Virus record (IMG/VR): IMGVR_UViG_3300023199_000204
Coordinates: 248,001 to 312,000 of that record
Reading direction: 5' to 3' (one strand)
DNA: 64,000 bases
In this document: positions 5,836 through 64,000 of the stretch, one piece after another
Numbering within the stretch: position 1 is the first letter of the stretch
Layout of the letters: each line of letters opens with the position of its first letter
Position numbers and translations under genes: made by a program
The notes under the pieces: model-generated
What the model saw: only the letters and a program-made list of their open reading frames with translations
What the model was told of the DNA's origin: nothing
Database searches by the model: none

Positions 5836-6831
5836 ATGATTGCTACTATTACTAAAGTAGATATGGTTGTGGATTTGGATCACGGAGATTGCGGAAAAGG
5901 AAAGATAAGTCACTGTTTGCTTTCCGAAAAAAAATATAATTATGTTTGTAAAGCTTCTGGTGGGAACAATGCTGGTCATACTATCTATCATAATAATGAG
6001 AAGTTTATAACCCATTATTCTCCGTCTGGAGTATTTAAGAATATTAATTCAGTAATATGTTCAGGATGTGTTGTACATCCTGAATCGTTTTTAGAGGAAG
6101 TTGGAAATTTAGTTTCACGAGGAATTCCTGCTGATAAGTTATTGAAAATTGCTTATAATGCTCATTTAGTAACTGATGAACATATAAAAGAAGATGTTGA
6201 AAATAATGTAGTTGGCAGTACTGGCAAAGGAATAGCACCAGCTTATAGAGATAAATATAATAGAACTGGACACCGAGTAGAAAAGTCTAAGCTTCTTCAA
6301 CCATTTTTATTTGATCCTATTATCTTACACAAGGCATCTAGAATTTTAGTTGAGGGTTCTCAAGGAATGTGGTTGTGTCCTGATCACGGAGATTACCCTT
6401 ATGTTACATCTAGTCCTCCTACTTCTTCTTACGCTCTACATTCTTTGGGCATGGCTCCAAGGAACGTAGGAGAGGTAATAGGAGTGTGTAAGCCATATTC
6501 AACATATGTTGGAACAAAAGATTTTCAACCAGATGGCAACATATATAAACAAATTCAAGATGTTGGAAAAGAATTTGGAGCCACGACTGGTCGTATGAGA
6601 CAAGTTCGAGAACTAAATCTATTAAAATTATATAAAGCAGCTCAAATTAATGGAGTAGATTATATAGTAATAAACAAGATGGATGTGTTAAGAGAAGTCA
6701 ATTATTGGAAATTATTAATAGACAAGGATAAACTTATTGACCGAAAAAATGAAGATAGTTTTAAAGAATACATAGTACAGTATATGAACAAATTTGAAAT
6801 AAAATTCTCATATAGTCCTAATAAGATATGA
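5836..6831 (+). CDS. purA: adenylosuccinate synthetase (short form)
   Basis: GDCGKGK P-loop with catalytic Asp, GGNNAGHT, VGSTGKGIAPAY, EGSQG, YPYVTSS, EFGATTGRMR. Confidence 0.92.
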   Translation: MIATITKVDMVVDLDHGDCGKGKISHCLLSEKKYNYVCKASGGNNAGHTIYHNNEKFITHYSPSGVFKNINSVICSGCVVHPESFLEEVGNLVSRGIPADKLLKIAYNAHLVTDEHIKEDVENNVVGSTGKGIAPAYRDKYNRTGHRVEKSKLLQPFLFDPIILHKASRILVEGSQGMWLCPDHGDYPYVTSSPPTSSYALHSLGMAPRNVGEVIGVCKPYSTYVGTKDFQPDGNIYKQIQDVGKEFGATTGRMRQVRELNLLKLYKAAQINGVDYIVINKMDVLREVNYWKLLIDKDKLIDRKNEDSFKEYIVQYMNKFEIKFSYSPNKI

Positions 6832-7659: not shown

Positions 7660-7759
7660 GGAGCAGTAAAAGAGTTAGTAGAACAGCTCGGAACGAGAAA
7701 CGAAAGCTCAGCCTTCTTAGGAAGTGTGGAAAATGTAGGTTCGAGTCCTACCTGCTCCG
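7660..7759 (+). ncRNA. tRNA-like RNA with perfect acceptor and T arms but non-canonical interior
   Basis: GGAGCAG/CTGCTCC stem, GTAGG-TTCGAGT-CCTAC T arm, no 7-nt anticodon loop recognisable. Confidence 0.6.
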
Positions 7760-8252: not shown

Positions 8253-8324
8253 AGGGCACGCTCGGGGTAAGCTGGCTGGTCTCCAAAACCGACTGAATGC
8301 TGGGTTCGAGTCCCAGGTGCCCTG
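8253..8324 (+). tRNA. tRNA-Trp(CCA)
   Basis: AGGGCAC/GTGCCCT, loop CT-CCA-AA, TTCGAGT T loop; D arm irregular. Confidence 0.8.
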
Positions 8325-29029: not shown

Positions 29030-29101
29030 GACGTGCTCCTTGGGACTGAGGGTTAGGCTCTGCAAAAGCTTGAATTTGGGGTTCAACTCCCCAGCACGTC
29101 T
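29030..29101 (+). tRNA. tRNA-Cys(GCA)
   Basis: GACGTGC/GCACGTC, AGGCT-CTGCAAA-AGCTT. Confidence 0.88.
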
Positions 29102-29115
29102 TGGAAATAAAATAA

Positions 29116-29248
29116 GGATGCGTTGAGCAGTGCGGTGAGCTTGGCGGGCTGTGGGGATTGATTAAATGGTAATTTTAATGAGTTCGATTCTCACATTCCC
29201 AAAACCCCGTGGTCTTCGGGCTTGTAGGTTCGATTCCTACCGCATCCA
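29116..29248 (+). tRNA. tRNA-Tyr(GUA) interrupted in the anticodon by a ~50-nt tRNA-like insert
   Basis: GGATGCG/CGCATCC-A, long variable arm with TTCG loop; removing 29153-29202 gives GCGGG-CTGTAAC-CCCGT. Confidence 0.75.
29153..29202 (+). ncRNA. nested minimal tRNA-like element (acceptor + one hairpin + T arm, no anticodon arm)
   Basis: (T)GGGGAT/ATTCCC(A); ATTAA..TTAAT hairpin; TGAG-TTCGATT-CTCA. Confidence 0.7.
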
Positions 29249-30352: not shown

Positions 30353-31048
30353 ATAAGGAGAAAGGAATGTCTAATAAATAAAAAAGAAGTTCTAGAGGTG
30401 TTAGAAAGGTATGAAGAGATTAAAAGTGAAATTAAAGGAACATTCTTAATTTATGCTAAATATTGTGGTATTTAAGTTTCAGAAATAGTTCATATTGAGG
30501 TAAACGAAAGTGAGGTTGAAGTAGAATACACTGAGCCAGGCGGATGTAGCTGTTGCTATACTAGTAGATACTCTACTTTTCCTATTAGTTATTTATGGGA
30601 AGAGAATTGGATTGAAAAGCTAAAAGCTAAGCATCAAGTGGAATTAGCCGAAAAAATTAAAAAGAAAGAAGAGGAAAAAGAAAGAAGAGAAAGAGAGCAA
30701 CTAGAGCTGGATAAAAAGCTTTATAAAAGATTAAAAGAAAAATTCGGCTAAAATAATCTTAGAGGCAGATTCCACTGGGTGAGTTAATAAGGAAAGTAAA
30801 ATAATGAATTTCGCAAAATGGTTTAGAGAACAGCAAAAAGACGCTAAGGCTGTAATTAATTTAACAAAACTTGATGTCAGAGATGAGCCTTGTCTTACCC
30901 TAAAGGGCAATAATAAATATAAAGTTTTGATAACACAAAATACATTTATTTCGAATGTATGTGGAATTTTCGTTGAAGATGTAAATTATGTATTAATGGA
31001 GGCACAAAATGAAGAAACGAAAACGTAAATAAAAATCAGGCAAACTAT

Positions 31049-31195
31049 GCCTCCGTGGTGTTAATGGCTTAGCACACTGGATTTTGCGAAAGACATTTGG
31101 TATGTAGATGTTAGAGGCAACTCTTTGGTCTAAGTGAGTTCGATTCTCACCTTTCGCGTAATCCATGAAGTGTGGGTTCGAATCCTACCGGGGCT
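31049..31195 (+). tRNA. tRNA-Lys(UUU) interrupted in the anticodon by a 73-nt tRNA-like insert
   Basis: GCCTCCG..GTGT/GCAC D arm; removing 31086-31158 gives CTGGA-TTTTTAA-TCCAT; T arm GTGGG-TTCGAAT-CCTAC; 3' acceptor G-run one base short. Confidence 0.72.
31086..31158 (+). ncRNA. nested tRNA-like element without a canonical anticodon loop
   Basis: Perfect GCGAAAG/CTTTCGC+G, D-like ATTT/AGAT, perfect GTGAG-TTCGATT-CTCAC. Confidence 0.8.
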
Positions 31196-32114
31196 ATAAA
31201 ATAGATTAGATAAGAGGATTTAGTTAATATTTATTATTAAAAGGAAAGGAAAAAATGAAAAGTAAAATTTTATCAGTTGTATTGTCAGTTTGTTTGTTAA
31301 TTGGAACGGTATTTGCGACTTCTGCCTGTGGAGACGACTTAGTTGTTAATGGAAAAAACATATAAAACCAAAGGTATTTTTACTCAAGATGAAAAAGACC
31401 CTTGTATTAAATATAGTTTAATTGCTGGAAATGTTGCTTGGGCAATTATATTTTTTGGAACAGCAGTTGCTCCAGTTTATTTTTTTGGATTTTCTTTATG
31501 GGAGCCAGCGAGAGTTAAGTCAGAATGCGAAAAGAAATAAAGTCTCCAAAAATAGGAATGGGAGCAACCATTCAACTTTGGTCAGATAGAATTGCTGGAA
31601 CAATCGTGAGAATTACAAAAACTAAAAAGACAATCTTTATTCAAGAAGATGCGGCATCAAGAATTGATAGAAACGGAATAAGTGAAAGCCAAAGATATGA
31701 ATATACTCCAAATTCTAAAGGAAATGTATATCGTGCTTCTTTAAGAAAATATGGAAGGTTTAGAGTATCAAAAACCAATGAATTAGTTAGTATTAGAGTA
31801 AGACGCAAGTTTTACGATTATTTTTTTTAAGGACATTATGGGAAGATTAAAAGTAGCTAGTTATATTGAAGAGTGGTTGAAATTAGAATGCCCACACTGT
31901 GAAGAGTCAAATTGGCTTCAATCATCATTTGGAGACATATTAGACCCTGATGTTGATGCGATTAGATGCCTATCCTGTAAAGAGTTGTTTCTTGTTTGTG
32001 AAAGAGAGGAATGGGAGAGTGAAGATAATTTATACATAGAAGATGGAGTGACTGATCCGTCTGAAATAAAAGAGTTAGATTTTTATAATGAAGAGATTTG
32101 GAATGATTAAATAA

Positions 32115-32187
32115 GGGTTTGTGGTGTCAATGTAGCATATTCGCCTCTTAAGCGAAAAGGTGATGGGTTCAAGTCCCTCCGAGCCTA
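32115..32187 (+). tRNA. tRNA-Lys(CUU)
   Basis: GGGTTTG/CGAGCCT, TTCGC-CTCTTAA-GCGAA. Confidence 0.85.
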
Positions 32188-32859
32188 CAATAATTGAAAG
32201 GAGAAAAATGAAAGATTTGAAAGACTATTCAATCGAAGATTTACAAAAAGAAATTAATAGAAGGGAAAAGTTAAGTAGTGTTCCAGAATTGATTGAAAAT
32301 CCTGATTTTTCCAATGCGATAAGGGAAGCAGAAGAAATCATCAACTCAGTGTTGGTAAATGATGGGCGTCCTGGGAAGGATTATAAAAATGGTATTTTCT
32401 CAGAAATAATGAAGGCATTATATGGACCAAGCTTTTTTTTGAATGGTGGAACAGTAATGTGAGGCATTAATGTTTGGAGTTAAAAGTGTTTCAGCATTAG
32501 TTCTTAACGAACTCATCCAAACTCAAGATGAGTATGTAAGAAAAAAAGCTTTGTCAAGGATACACAAAAGCATTAAGAGGCTTAAAAATATATTTGATGA
32601 ACTTGAAGGTATAAAAAACAGAAATGTATTTGATGATCTTTATTTTTCAACATAGGAGGCTATACTTGATAAAGTATTAGATGATAAGTGTATTCCATAT
32701 AAGGTAGCATCATATATTCATACAACATTAACTTCTTATATTAGAAGTAGAAGAAGAGAGATATATCTTAAAAATTATTTTGTTAAGAAGAAAAGGGGTA
32801 GGAAGAGATTAATAAACAAGACCAAAAAACATTTGGAAGAATATGAAAGTTATATAAAT

Positions 32860-32933
32860 TCAGCTGTCTTCTAACTGGATAAGATCCCTGGCTTTGAACT
32901 AGGGCAATGTGGGTTCGAATCCCATTATTCCCG
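32860..32933 (+). pseudogene. tRNA-Gln(UUG) body with non-complementary acceptor strands
   Basis: Good D, anticodon (CCTGG-CTTTGAA-CTAGG) and T arms, but TCAGCTG vs TATTCCC. Confidence 0.6.
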
Positions 32934-40634: not shown

Positions 40635-40717
40635 GCATCCCGTTCCAGACGCCTGTCTTCTAAATAGGTTCCTTAATAGTTTGGGGGAGGTAAGAGGTTC
40701 GAGTCCTCCGGGGTGTT
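40635..40717 (+). tRNA. atypical tRNA-Arg(UCU): no D arm, long variable arm, 8/4 fold
   Basis: GCATCCCG/CGGGGTGT, CCTGT-CTTCTAA-ATAGG, 8-bp V stem, GAGG-TTCGAGT-CCTC. Confidence 0.62.
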
Positions 40718-42241: not shown

Positions 42242-43239
42242 ATGTTAGTGTCTAAAATATTACTAAAGTTTATAGATCTATTTTGTGGAATCGGAGCATT
42301 TCATCAAGCAATTATTAATCTCAAGAATAAATCTATAATTAAAGATTATAAATGCATTCTATCTTGTGATATAGATAAAGATGCAAAGGAAACTTATCAA
42401 AAAAACTTTGATACAGATTTATTTATAAATGATGTTAAAGATGTATCAGACATTAATAATACTTATAGCTTATTATGTGCAGGATTTCCTTGTCAACCGT
42501 TTAGTATTTCAGGAAATAAACGGGGTTTTAATGATGAGAGAGCAGGTCTATTTTTTAAAGTTGTTGATATTGTAAAAAAAACTAATCCTAATTTTATAAT
42601 AATAGAAAACTCGCCTCGTTTAATTAGGAATAGTAGTTATTTCTCAGTCATACAAAATGAATTAGATAATGCTGGATATAATGTTAATGCTGAGATTATT
42701 AATTCTAATAAATTCGCAACTCCTAAAAAAAAGAATCAAAGGTTATATAGTTGCTATCAATAAAAATATTAATATTAATTATATATTTTCCTAAAGGGGA
42801 GGAACATAATTTATCAGTCCATGATATATTAGATTCTTCAGTTCAGAAACACTTAATCGAAAAAAGATATGAAATAATATGGAATAAAACTGTTAATGAA
42901 AACAAAAAATACGGACCTATTAGAATAGGATATGTTTTAAAGAGAAGACAAGGAGAACGCATTTATAGTGTTGACGGGCATTCAATAACCTTAACTGCTT
43001 CGGGAGGAGGCCCTGGTAGAAGTACTGGATTATATTGTGTAGATAAAAGTAAAAACATTATTAGAAGATTATCAGTTAATGAATGTAGGAAATTATCAGG
43101 CTTTAATAATGATTTTATTGTTAATAAAAATAAAAGAGTTGCTTATAAACAATTTGGAAATACTATTGTAGTTCCTGTAGTAGAAGCTATTATAAAAAAT
43201 TTAGTTTTACAGACAAAAGAAGAGAATTGGAGTGACTAG
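42242..43239 (+). pseudogene. dcm: C5 cytosine DNA methyltransferase split by frameshift(s)
   Basis: DLFCGIG, AGFPCQPFS and IENS in the first ORF; RRLSVNECRKLSGF and YKQFGNTIVVPVV in the second; break at an A-tract near 42724. Confidence 0.85.
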
Positions 43240-44500: not shown

Positions 44501-44944
44501 ATGAACCCACAAGCTATTAGATTATATCACGTTGGCTACCATAACAAACCAGGACAGATATACAGGTTTTATACTATAAGGCTAAAATGGGATGATGGTG
44601 GGAGAATGGATTTTCCAAGTGAGGAGCACGCAAATGCTTACTTAGAAGGAAGACCAGCAAATTTTGTAAGTAATATTAAATTATCATCAAAAGTCCCTGT
44701 TAAAAAGGAAGAGGTTATTGCTGAAGCAACAGAATTTAATGTTATGTTAAATTCCTATGGAGTAAATAAAGTTCCTGTAATCAAGGTTGTGAGAGAAATA
44801 ACTTCTCTTGGTCTCAGAGATGCGAAGAATCTCGTTGAGTCTGCCCCTGTTGCGATACAGGAGGGTTTAGAGAAAGAGCAAGCCGAAAAGACAGCAAGGA
44901 AGTTAAAAGAGCTTGGAGCGGAAGTGGAAGTGGTTTCAGCTTAA
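44501..44944 (+). CDS. ribosomal protein bL12 C-terminal domain fused to an unrelated N-terminal domain
   Basis: [44 protein letters not shown]. Confidence 0.88.
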
Positions 44945-51906: not shown

Positions 51907-53214
51907 ATGTCAGTAATAGCAATGGAAGTAATGGAGGCGTTTGATCATCCAAATGCTGATTCATTAAGAGTTTATAAATTTATAGCACCAGGGCAAGCAT
52001 CAAAAGAGCGTCCACTTCAAATAGTTGCGAATCTTGAAAATGTGTATGAGGTTGGCGATGTCGTTGCTGTTGCGTTGGTTGGAACTGTTTTAAAAGATGA
52101 AACCACTATCAAAAAAGTAAATCTTCGTGGAGAGTCTTCATACGGAATGGCTTTGGGAAAAGTCGATGCCAAGGTCGGCGAAAATCTTTCTGATAAATAT
52201 GAGGCAGAAGAGATAAAACCTTCAATGGCAGGATTTATTAAATGGCCGAGCATTTCAGGTTTTCATAATATTAGAAAATCATTAGAGAAAATAAAAGAAT
52301 ATGAGGGAGGTGCTTTTACTTATCCAAAACTTGATTACAAATGTAAAGTGAAATTACACGGAACGAATTCGGGTGTTCATTTACATTCTGATGGAACATT
52401 TGCTGTTCAAAGTCGTTCAAGAATATTAACTCCTGAGCACGATAATTTGGGGTTTTATAGATGGACGCAGGATAGGAAAAATCATTTTGAAAAGTGGGCA
52501 AAATCTGCCGGTAGAAATTTAACCGTATTCGGAGAATTTTGTGGAGAGGGAATTCAAAAAGGCGTTGCTGTATCCAAGATAGAGAGGAAGATATTTGTTG
52601 TTTTCGCAGTCCAAGTTGATGAAAATACACTAATAACCGATCCAGAAGAAATCAATGGTTATGTTTTGGAACACGAAGATATAAAAGTTTTACCTTGGTA
52701 TGATGCTAATTTCTTCATTGATTATTCAAATACTGATTTGTTAAGGGCTGTTATTAAGGATATAAATGCTGAGGTAGATAAAGTAGAAAAAGAAGACCCT
52801 TGGGTAAAAGAAGTTTTTGGAGTGAGTGGTATAGGCGAAGGGTTAGTTTTTTATCCTTATAAAGAATATGATAGGGATAGAATATCTTTATTAATGTTTA
52901 AAGCGAAAGGAGAGAAGCATCAGGTTGCTGTTCAAAATAAGCCAGTCCAACTAGATCCAGAAGTATTAAATTCAATTAATGAGTTCTCTGATAAATTCAT
53001 TACAGAGGCAAGACTTGAACAAGGAGTTGCTGAAGGTTGTGATGGCAAGTTGGAAATGAAAATGATGGGTAAGTTTATTAAATGGATTATGTCTGATGTT
53101 AATAAAGAATCAAAAGACGAATTGGAAGCTTCGGGACTTAAATGGAAACAAGTAGGAAAAGAAGTTTCAAGTCGAGCCAGAAATTGGTATAAACAAAAGG
53201 TGGAAGAAATATAA
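51907..53214 (+). CDS. Rnl2-type ATP-dependent RNA ligase with N-terminal tRNA-binding OB-fold
   Basis: N-terminal HPNADSL..VGDVVAVALVG..LRGESSYGM (PheT/Trbp111-like); KLHGTN motif I, FGEF, GEGLV, FKAK, ITEARL. Confidence 0.85.
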   Translation: MSVIAMEVMEAFDHPNADSLRVYKFIAPGQASKERPLQIVANLENVYEVGDVVAVALVGTVLKDETTIKKVNLRGESSYGMALGKVDAKVGENLSDKYEAEEIKPSMAGFIKWPSISGFHNIRKSLEKIKEYEGGAFTYPKLDYKCKVKLHGTNSGVHLHSDGTFAVQSRSRILTPEHDNLGFYRWTQDRKNHFEKWAKSAGRNLTVFGEFCGEGIQKGVAVSKIERKIFVVFAVQVDENTLITDPEEINGYVLEHEDIKVLPWYDANFFIDYSNTDLLRAVIKDINAEVDKVEKEDPWVKEVFGVSGIGEGLVFYPYKEYDRDRISLLMFKAKGEKHQVAVQNKPVQLDPEVLNSINEFSDKFITEARLEQGVAEGCDGKLEMKMMGKFIKWIMSDVNKESKDELEASGLKWKQVGKEVSSRARNWYKQKVEEI

Positions 53215-62398: not shown

Positions 62399-62986
62399 GT
62401 GAATTATGAAAATCTTAAAGAATTAAGAAGAAGAACTCTTGCTCCGTATATTAAATGTAAATCTGCTTTGATTGACTCTAATGGTGATATAGAGAAAGCA
62501 ATAAAATTGCTTCTTGAGCAAGGGTTTAAAAAACAGCGGAGACTTTTGGGCAACCCAACTGATAGTGGAATTGTTCACGCATATGTTCATCCTGGAGACA
62601 AAATAGGTGTTTTGGTTGAGCTAAAGTGTCAAACTGATTTTGTTGCTAGAACGGAAGAATTTAGAACTTTCGCTCACGAACTTTCTCTACAAGTCGCTTC
62701 AATGAAACCTAAATATATTTCAAGAGATGATGTTCTTCAAGAAGATATTGATAAGGAAAAAGAACTGCTTTTAAAAAATATGAAAAGAAAGAAGATGCCT
62801 GATGAAGATATAAAGAAGGCTTTGCCTTCTGCTATAGAAAGATGGTATGCTGAAATTTGCTTATTGGAACAACCTTATATTAAAAACAGCATAAAGTCAG
62901 TTAAAGATGTTCTTGCCGAATTAATTAATAAAGTGGGAGAGAATTGTAGAATATCTAAATTTTCAAGATGGGAAATAGGTGAATAA
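62399..62986 (+). CDS. tsf: translation elongation factor Ts (short form)
   Basis: LKELRRRT..CKSAL..GDIEKAI, GIVHAYVH, LVELKCQTDFVAR, LLEQPYIK, SKFSRWEIGE. Confidence 0.9.
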   Translation: MNYENLKELRRRTLAPYIKCKSALIDSNGDIEKAIKLLLEQGFKKQRRLLGNPTDSGIVHAYVHPGDKIGVLVELKCQTDFVARTEEFRTFAHELSLQVASMKPKYISRDDVLQEDIDKEKELLLKNMKRKKMPDEDIKKALPSAIERWYAEICLLEQPYIKNSIKSVKDVLAELINKVGENCRISKFSRWEIGE

Positions 62987-63693: not shown

Positions 63694-64000
63694 GGGGACG
63701 AAATGGATTCGACAGAGGCGACAAAGATAAATAAAGCAAGTAAGGGAATGTCTATTTTCTCTTTGAAAAATATAGGCAAAAATAAGTAACGAAAATTACG
63801 CACTTGCTGCCTAATTAGGTAGCACATCTGAAGTTTTCTCTCACTCGTGACGGAACTTCAAGATGTCAAATGAACGAGGTAATAATTATTCTTTTAGCGA
63901 TTGGGAATAATTATGAAATTTTAATTGCTTCGTAATTTAGTAGCTTGTTTATGGGCGACTTTATTATTAAATTAAATCATAAACTAAACTTGTAGATGTC
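63694..64000 (+). ncRNA. ssrA: tmRNA, 3' end truncated by the window
   Basis: 5' GGGGACGAAATGGATTCGACAG; internal tag ORF 63776-63814 reading AKISNENYALAA*. Confidence 0.9.

Follow-up and report, generated by a model that had tools for sequence, protein, structure and literature searches.

A tRNA-shaped insert, inferred to be an intron, splits the tRNA-Tyr gene of a jumbo phage

A 316-kb phage carries a well-formed class II tRNA-Tyr(GUA) gene whose anticodon loop is interrupted, between U35 and A36, by a 50-nt miniature tRNA look-alike. We consider it likely that this is a functional split tRNA gene whose insert is removed from the RNA. Our preferred but still tentative explanation for the removal is excision by the ordinary tRNA end-processing enzymes of the host followed by resealing by a phage RNA ligase, a splicing route not yet shown in bacteria. 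The locus lies at positions 29116-29248 (+) of a 64,000-nt stretch of DNA, here called the window, which covers positions 248,001-312,000 of the 316,473-bp phage contig IMGVR_UViG_3300023199_000204. The window has a GC content of 30.5% and constitutes a translation island carrying 26 tRNAs called by ARAGORN, a further tRNA-Lys(CUU) seen only by Rfam, a tmRNA, ribosomal protein L7/L12, EF-Ts and an RNA ligase, and no cultured phage is close to it at the DNA level. The features discussed are summarised in Table 1.

Table 1. Coordinates in the window of the split tRNA-Tyr gene and of associated features
Position	Strand	Feature	Details
29116..29152	+	Exon 1 of tRNA-Tyr(GUA)	Acceptor 5' strand, D arm, anticodon stem 5' strand, loop bases C32 U33 G34 U35; aligns base for base with the 5' half of the Aeromonas phage TS3 tRNA-Tyr
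29153..29202	+	50-nt tRNA-shaped insert (inferred intron)	Acceptor 5' strand from 29153/29154; AU hairpin 29161-29179 with loop UGGUAAU; T arm 29178-29194 (T loop 29183-29189); acceptor 3' strand 29195-29201; discriminator A29202
29203..29248	+	Exon 2 of tRNA-Tyr	A36 A37 C38, anticodon stem 3' strand, TTCG-capped variable arm, T arm, acceptor 3' strand, A73; no CCA encoded
29030..29101	+	tRNA-Cys(GCA)	14 nt upstream on the same strand; probably the same precursor transcript (co-transcription inferred)
31049..31197	+	Sister element, tRNA-Lys(UUU) gene split between positions 35 and 36	73-nt cloverleaf-like insert (31086-31158) whose ends are exactly its +1 base and its discriminator; outer acceptor stem has one extra T compared with its relative L068
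51907..53214	+	RNA ligase, candidate sealing enzyme	N-terminal tRNA-binding OB domain and Rnl2-like nucleotidyltransferase domain

The initial annotation had described a tRNA-Tyr split at this site by a minimal tRNA mimic of about 50 nt, and all of its sequence statements hold. The outer acceptor strand GGATGCG (29116-29122) pairs with CGCATCC (29241-29247) and is followed by A73 at 29248, a D arm is present, the anticodon stem is formed by 29144-29148 with 29206-29210, and the T arm is GTAGG/TTCGATT/CCTAC. The loop reads C29149 T G T29152, then the 50 nt, then A29203 A C29205. The long variable arm, G1-C72 and A73 correspond to the bacterial Tyr identity set, and once 29153-29202 is removed in silico the gene shows the complete tRNA cloverleaf, with a 7-bp acceptor, a D arm, a 5-bp anticodon stem with a 7-nt loop (U33, purine 37) and a T arm with the T-loop consensus. 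When the flanks were joined in silico at 72 alternative junctions, only 29152|29203 gave an ARAGORN tRNA-Tyr(gta), of 83 nt, and this junction cannot be shifted because the flanking bases differ. The unspliced gene is missed by ARAGORN in default mode and by Rfam (RF00005) at the gathering threshold, whereas ARAGORN in intron mode independently flags both 29116-29248 and 31048-31197. Moreover, the joined exons match the uninterrupted tRNA-Tyr(gta) of the Aeromonas phage vB_AdhS_TS3 (OP820700.1, Demerecviridae) at 72 of 83 positions (86.7% identity), with the gap falling exactly at CTGT|AAC, and the two acceptor-stem differences are compensatory (GGATGTT/AACATCC versus GGATGCG/CGCATCC in the window).

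Concern had been expressed that the adjacent G4, A4 and C4 runs left the register uncertain by one base in this assembly. However, the sequence, including these runs, is identical in two further assemblies, from JGI sample 3300022725 and from a Logan assembly of SRR23862440, with 0 mismatches over 6.4 kb and 5.7 kb, respectively. An assembly artefact or chimera is therefore very improbable, although the contig derives from a metagenome and one gene in the window, encoding a C5 methylase, is split just after an A8 run; relatives of the split gene also exist in independent metagenomes.

Reading from its 5' end, the insert shows a G-rich acceptor strand, an AU hairpin with a D-loop-like loop, a T arm (ATGAG-TTCGATT-CTCAC) with one A.C mismatch, the acceptor 3' strand ATTCCC(A) and A29202, and it lacks an anticodon arm and a variable region. 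It shares the 16-mer TGAGTTCGATTCTCAC with the insert of the neighbouring Lys gene; this sequence occurs exactly twice in the 64 kb, at 29179 and 31135, against an expected number of 0.04. No ordinary tRNA in the window carries this T arm and the Lys insert matches window tRNAs no better than do shuffled versions of itself, so that a recent local duplication of an ordinary tRNA, which had been named beforehand as a possible refutation, is excluded. Free-energy folding alone does not single out the tRNA-like fold of the 50-nt insert, since its z-score is only -1.3 to -1.6 and the minimum free-energy structure is a different hairpin, and the predicted fold rests instead on homology and covariation. 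In contrast, the 73-nt Lys insert does fold as a cloverleaf (z-score -3.7, 0 of 200 shuffles).

Relatives of the insert occur in other phage and metagenome contigs (designated here by L numbers). Inserts of 48-50 nt that start with the same CTGT|GGG and carry nearly the same T arm split tRNA-Asn(GUU) genes at the same 35/36 site, in four sequence variants from at least seven viral or metagenome contigs (L105, which equals L173, L177 and L187; L185, which equals L172 and L175; L186; L190). They are about 63-65% identical to the window insert and 75-88% identical to each other. The uninterrupted tRNA-Asn of Bacillus phage Moonbeam, about 93% identical over the exons, marks the empty site exactly at CTGT|TAA. 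On the alignment of these four variants plus the window sequence, the nested structure, consisting of the outer cloverleaf and two inner helices, is 90% paired and 20 of 31 pairs have changed on both sides, a result reached by 0 of 500 shuffles, while slid controls gave 38-50%. The insert-bearing genes have therefore gone on evolving as tRNAs, which argues that the insert is removed from the RNA, and the inner helices are selected too.

Other forms were also found. L068, on a 240-kb phage contig, has a tRNA body homologous to the Lys gene of the window, split as CUU|83 nt|UGAC, and removal of its insert gives tRNA-Gln(ttg). IMG/VR contigs L075 and L090 carry Thr(UGU), Lys(UUU) and Asn(GUU) genes with the architecture listed for the Lak megaphages, namely a leader hairpin, a mini tRNA, a discriminator and then exon 2. 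Free-standing elements of 41-52 nt with a 12-bp stack, an AAUGGUUAU connector and a T loop occur in many viral contigs and covary strongly (96% paired, 11 of 12 pairs), and one of these, L033, is almost a free-standing twin of the window insert. A covariance model built from nine free-standing 43-nt elements ranked the Tyr insert first in the window, but only at 17.5 bits and E=0.11, and it misaligned the 5' strand because of the extra hairpin. A scan for two T loops 27-40 nt apart yielded at least 120 loci, of which we estimated about 10 by chance, and only a minority of the hits are truly nested.

Several other searches were negative. An exact-pattern scan of the T arm plus acceptor of the insert found only the source contig and ordinary tRNAs, and a scan of 185,579 reference bacterial and archaeal genomes for the Tyr/Asn insert pattern returned only tRNA-Sec and tmRNA genes. 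The cultured-phage database holds no interrupted homologue of the Tyr, Lys, Asn (L185) or Gln (L068) genes. Searching for relatives through neighbouring proteins gave, for a 362-aa neighbour, only two distant contigs (L007 and L008) with no split tRNA in reach and, for the ligase alone, only the source contig, while a promoter and terminator scan was uninformative.

These results bear on the possibility that the gene is dead, a selfish mini tRNA-like element having inactivated a tRNA-Tyr that the phage no longer needs. In favour of this view, free-standing copies of similar elements are scattered through many phage contigs, the window holds several other defective-looking tRNA-like genes, the sister Lys gene has a flawed outer acceptor stem and there is a possible one-base processing problem in Tyr. 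Nevertheless, we consider it unlikely, because every outer helix of the Tyr gene is intact, the acceptor changes relative to TS3 are compensatory and the insert-bearing Asn genes have retained their cloverleaf through many compensatory changes since they diverged. Moreover, no other Tyr or Lys(UUU) tRNA is found among the 27 tRNAs of the window, although TAT (38 per 1000) and AAA (73 per 1000) are heavily used codons.

With respect to mechanism, the only features conserved across the inserts are those that RNase P and RNase Z read: an acceptor/T-arm stack, the T-loop consensus, a GG-containing loop for the elbow, an unpaired discriminator and the absence of CCA. The Tyr insert shows these features, with a stack of about 12 bp, subject to the mismatch in its T stem and an ambiguous acceptor register. 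The Lys insert runs exactly from a canonical +1 base (GCGAAAG pairs with CTTTCGC) to its discriminator G, and its exons then give the loop UUUU|UAA. For Tyr, a 12+1 count places the 3' cut after A29202, as the tRNA requires, and the model built only from free-standing elements ends at the same base. The 5' side depends on register. Counting 12 positions from the inner T loop does pair A29201 with T29152, as the initial annotation stated, one base earlier than the tRNA needs. This difficulty partly dissolves when the insert is aligned with its Asn relatives, in which G1 is unpaired opposite position 72 and pairing proceeds from G2-C71 onward, with two pairs changed on both sides; G29153 is then the +1 base and A29202 the discriminator. 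However, the G4 run permits a slipped and more stable register (U35-A29201, G29153-C29200 and so on; 7 of 7 pairs against 5 of 7), and a strict 12-bp count in that register would cut one base early and give a 6-nt loop. Every leaderless case has U at -1 and G at +1, which is the bacterial RNase P preference. None of the 26 ARAGORN-called tRNAs of the window, and neither insert, encodes CCA, which fits RNase Z-type processing and implies that the host must process tRNA 3' ends endonucleolytically and add CCA.

A suitable candidate for sealing is the 435-aa protein encoded at 51907-53211, which carries PF01588, a PheRS-beta-type tRNA-binding OB domain, fused to an Rnl2-like domain, PF09414 (E=2.4e-13; phrog_548, E=1.6e-53). 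Its closest solved relatives are PheRS-beta B2 and T4 Rnl2 (structure match to T4 Rnl2, E=1.2e-4). The nucleotidyltransferase motifs I, IV and V, with the adenylylated lysine (K149-L-D-G-T-N154, E311-G312 and K332/K334), are invariant in 14 homologues. Rnl2 seals 3'-OH/5'-PO4 nicks (PMC3884662), and no kinase/phosphatase (Pnkp) or RtcB was seen in the window.

In the pathway that we propose, the gene would be transcribed with its neighbours as a CCA-less precursor in which the insert folds into the part of a tRNA that the end-processing enzymes read, an acceptor/T-arm stack plus a D-loop/T-loop elbow. Host RNase P would cut between U35 and G29153, leaving a 3'-OH on exon 1, and host RNase Z would cut after A29202, leaving a 5'-phosphate on exon 2, ends that RtcB cannot use but an Rnl2-type ligase can. 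The exons would be held together by the outer acceptor, D and T arms until the phage ligase restores the loop CUGUAAC, and the normal 3' end would then receive CCA. The analysis establishes the split gene, the tRNA-like anatomy of the insert, its family, the covariation and the presence of the ligase, whereas every enzymatic step, including cleavage at the predicted sites and ligation, is inferred from sequence in the absence of RNA data. In this view the element is most simply an intron-like, evolutionarily mobile passenger, tolerated because it borrows universal tRNA-processing enzymes, although extra roles, for example in timing tRNA supply or as a decoy after release, are not excluded.

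Some observations do not fit this scheme, and for this reason we hold the full mechanism only tentatively. In the closest relatives, the Asn inserts, exon 2 starts 3 nt after the discriminator (GAT, GAG or GTC), and in L068 it starts after an encoded T-CCA, so that a cut at the discriminator is not the general rule. Lak-type introns carry a leader that RNase P alone cannot remove and would leave on exon 1. The ligase family is mostly cellular, with the closest homologues on cellular contigs, and it is widespread in phages without any nested tRNA nearby; 80 viral loci with ligase relatives held no nested tRNA within 6 kb, and ARAGORN intron-mode calls there were fusions of neighbouring tRNAs. 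Its presence may therefore simply reflect repair of nuclease-cut tRNAs. The imperfect outer acceptor stem of the sister Lys gene, the A.C mismatch in the inner T stem and the energy folding of the Tyr insert also speak against the scheme. The differing exon 2 starts and the Lak leaders could also indicate that the intron is removed by another route, such as a dedicated, still unrecognised phage endonuclease, or a different host nuclease (RNase E or G, or an RNase Z that cuts after position 76) followed by trimming, with sealing by this or another ligase. Most neighbouring ORFs have no recognisable function and several HNH endonuclease genes lie in the tRNA island. We regard this alternative as less likely, since the conserved features are exactly those read by RNase P and RNase Z, the boundaries fit canonical sites in both window cases and no candidate nuclease was found next to the split genes.

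The interpretation offered in the initial annotation is partly supported. The split by a tRNA mimic, the grouping of the Tyr and Lys inserts in one family and the view that the arrangement looks selected rather than accidental are all borne out. The further suggestion that the targets were chosen because they are attacked by defence systems is only weakly supported: Tyr and Lys are indeed targets of PtuAB/Septu and PARIS/PrrC, and T5-family phages supply those tRNAs as countermeasures (PMC11555353, PMC11464382, PMC13096335), but related inserts also split Asn, Gln, Thr, Phe and Gly tRNAs and the choice of target is therefore not explained by defence alone. Homologous inserts at the same loop position in non-homologous tRNAs point either to an intron-like element that has moved between tRNA genes or to a position constraint set by the splicing machinery. 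An alternative, that the released 50-nt RNA is the product that matters and acts as a decoy or inhibitor of tRNA-directed defence nucleases or of tRNA-binding enzymes, with the outer tRNA serving mainly as a carrier guaranteeing transcription and precise release, would be consistent with the covarying free-standing elements and with Tyr, Lys and Asn being nuclease targets (PMC11555353, PMC11464382, PMC13096335). We consider it improbable, as the insert lacks the anticodon and variable arms which those nucleases cut, other isoacceptors are also interrupted and it does not explain why the exons stay perfect, although it is compatible with the proposed pathway rather than opposed to it.

Bacterial tRNA introns are taught as self-splicing group I ribozymes, and enzymatic tRNA splicing is regarded as an archaeal and eukaryotic trait. 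It is possible, though on present evidence somewhat less likely than not, that bacterial viruses have a protein- and RNase P-dependent tRNA splicing pathway, and that the intron family, moving between Tyr, Asn, Lys and Gln genes and also living free-standing, represents a new class of mobile RNA element that parasitises tRNA end-processing, possibly with a second life as a released mini-tRNA. The two leaderless inserts of the window are the simplest members of the phenomenon seen so far: both intron ends coincide with the ends of a tRNA-shaped module, the expected cut products have exactly the chemistry that an Rnl2-type ligase needs, and such a ligase lies in the same tRNA island, which makes the mechanism directly testable with three enzymes. 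Moreover, since standard tRNA finders miss these genes, the tRNA repertoires of large phages are under-counted, including isoacceptors linked to anti-defence.

The closest published systems are the "enigmatic" tRNA introns of Lak megaphages (Devoto et al. 2019, PMC6784885; bioRxiv 10.1101/356790), which the initial annotation had missed. These also lie in the anticodon loops of huge-phage tRNA genes and lack an Rfam match, and one was noted to look like a tRNA; in Table S6 of that work the Phe and "Tyr" introns contain the same kind of mini tRNA, with an acceptor helix, a short connector and a T arm followed directly by exon 2. They differ in being 79-114 nt long and in carrying a 24-28-nt 5' leader hairpin (loop AGUAAA) and a 13-bp stack with discriminator C, whereas the window inserts have no leader and a 12-position stack with discriminator A or G, such that both ends coincide with tRNA ends. 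The Lak "Tyr" is class I and reads better as Asn(GUU). No mechanism was proposed for the Lak introns, which have been unexplained since 2019, and our literature searches found no later paper describing one.

Group I introns also interrupt anticodon loops of bacterial and phage tRNA genes but they are self-splicing ribozymes of more than 200 nt with a conserved catalytic core (P3-P9), while this insert is 50 nt and gave no RF00028 match even at E-values up to 10; a small self-cleaving ribozyme reading was likewise rejected. Archaeal and eukaryal protein-spliced introns (EndA/TSEN, RtcB or Trl1) share the enzymatic cutting and sealing of a short anticodon-loop intron but sit mostly at position 37/38, are recognised through a 3-nt bulge/4-bp helix/3-nt bulge motif and leave 2',3'-cyclic phosphate and 5'-OH ends. 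Here the position is 35/36, the expected ends are 3'-OH and 5'-P, and inspection of the window and of four Asn relatives revealed at most a 2-bp helix (C32-U33 with A-G) between the two sites, which is not conserved. The tRNA-like elements released by RNase P and RNase Z, including mascRNA from MALAT1, mitochondrial tRNA punctuation and plant t-elements, similarly use a tRNA-shaped module inside a longer transcript as the signal for both enzymes, but their flanks are not rejoined and the systems are eukaryotic or organellar. T5-family anti-defence tRNAs, tRNA-Tyr against retron Ec78 PtuAB (PMC11555353) and tRNA-Lys against PARIS (PMC11464382), are the same isoacceptors, and the window's exons are closest to the tRNA-Tyr of a T5-like phage, but those genes are uninterrupted. 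Finally, in T4 Pnkp/Rnl1 repair of PrrC-cut tRNA-Lys and in T4 Rnl2 nick sealing (PMC3884662) a phage ATP-dependent ligase joins a 3'-OH and a 5'-P end in or near a tRNA anticodon loop; that is repair of damage and needs end healing, whereas here the nick would be a programmed processing intermediate and the ligase has a PheRS-beta-type tRNA-binding domain.

Two of the tRNA-like genes listed in the table were missed by both ARAGORN and Rfam, although each carries 7 of 7 acceptor pairs and a perfect 5-bp T arm with the T loop TTCGAGT; their middle parts are aberrant. The tRNA-Lys(CUU) was found by Rfam (41.7 bits) but not by ARAGORN. The tRNA-Gln(UUG) gene is intact from position 8 to the discriminator but the 7 nt just upstream do not pair with its 3' acceptor strand. 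A partly complementary AGGGGTA lies about 65 nt upstream, and this arrangement may represent either an insert at position 7/8 or a 5'-truncated gene. The Arg(UCU)-like gene shows a good acceptor stem, anticodon arm and T arm, but it has no D arm and its variable region extends over 24 nt. For the split Lys gene, the outer acceptor 5' strand is GCCTCCG whereas its relative on the phage contig L068 has GCCCCG against the same 3' strand CGGGGC and, therefore, the window gene has a bulged T or a mismatch in its acceptor stem.

The phage also encodes translation components next to its tRNA array, and a C5 cytosine DNA methylase gene that is split into two overlapping ORFs just downstream of an A8 run, which is either a real frameshift or a homopolymer indel.

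Coordinates of additional features in the window and in other phage and viral sequences
Sequence	Position	Strand	Feature
Window	7660-7758	+	tRNA-like gene
Window	8253-8323	+	tRNA-like gene
Window	31049-31055		Outer acceptor 5' strand of the split Lys gene
Window	32115-32187	+	tRNA-Lys(CUU)
Window	32865-32933, with 32794-32800	+	tRNA-Gln(UUG)
Window	40635-40717	+	Arg(UCU)-like gene
Window	42242-43236	+	C5 cytosine DNA methylase, A8 run at 42725
Window	44501-44941, 62399-62983, 63694-64000		Ribosomal protein L7/L12, EF-Ts and a tmRNA
L185 (203-kb phage contig)	2792-2978		Group I intron
L027 (viral contig)	6419-6485	-	Type-P3 twister ribozyme
L086 (Aeromonas phage Aeh1, AY266303.2)	96609-96779		tRNA-like gene with two T loops

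Free-standing mini tRNA-like elements of 41-52 nt occur in unrelated viral contigs, which we denote L020, L027, L030, L033, L036, L041, L042 (two copies), L046 and L017/L024. Each has a 12-bp acceptor/T stack, an AAUGGUUAU connector and a T loop, and covariation among them is strong, although they match no Rfam family. At the L027 locus, the twister ribozyme (41.8 bits) lies about 1 kb from the mini-element. In a further set of loci, comprising L047, L060, L066, L070, L071 and about 45 more among the at least 120 loci hit by a scan for two T loops 27-40 nt apart, an ordinary tRNA is followed within about 30 nt by an extra T-arm-like hairpin or mini-element, and some contigs (L048, L059 and L069) have arrays of such hairpins. 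On L185, the group I intron (Rfam 50.5 bits) is located about 190 nt downstream of the nested tRNA-Asn.

The tRNA-like gene of Aeromonas phage Aeh1 is unannotated, but it is conserved at 90-100% in 13 cultured Aeromonas T4-like phages and is labelled tRNA-OTHER in PX29. The gene listed as tRNA-Tyr(GTA) of Lak megaphage A1 (Table S6 of PMC6784885) is class I and would have U37 as annotated; when it is read with the intron ending after the discriminator of the mini-tRNA, it becomes Asn(GUU), split CUGU|..|UAA between positions 35 and 36.
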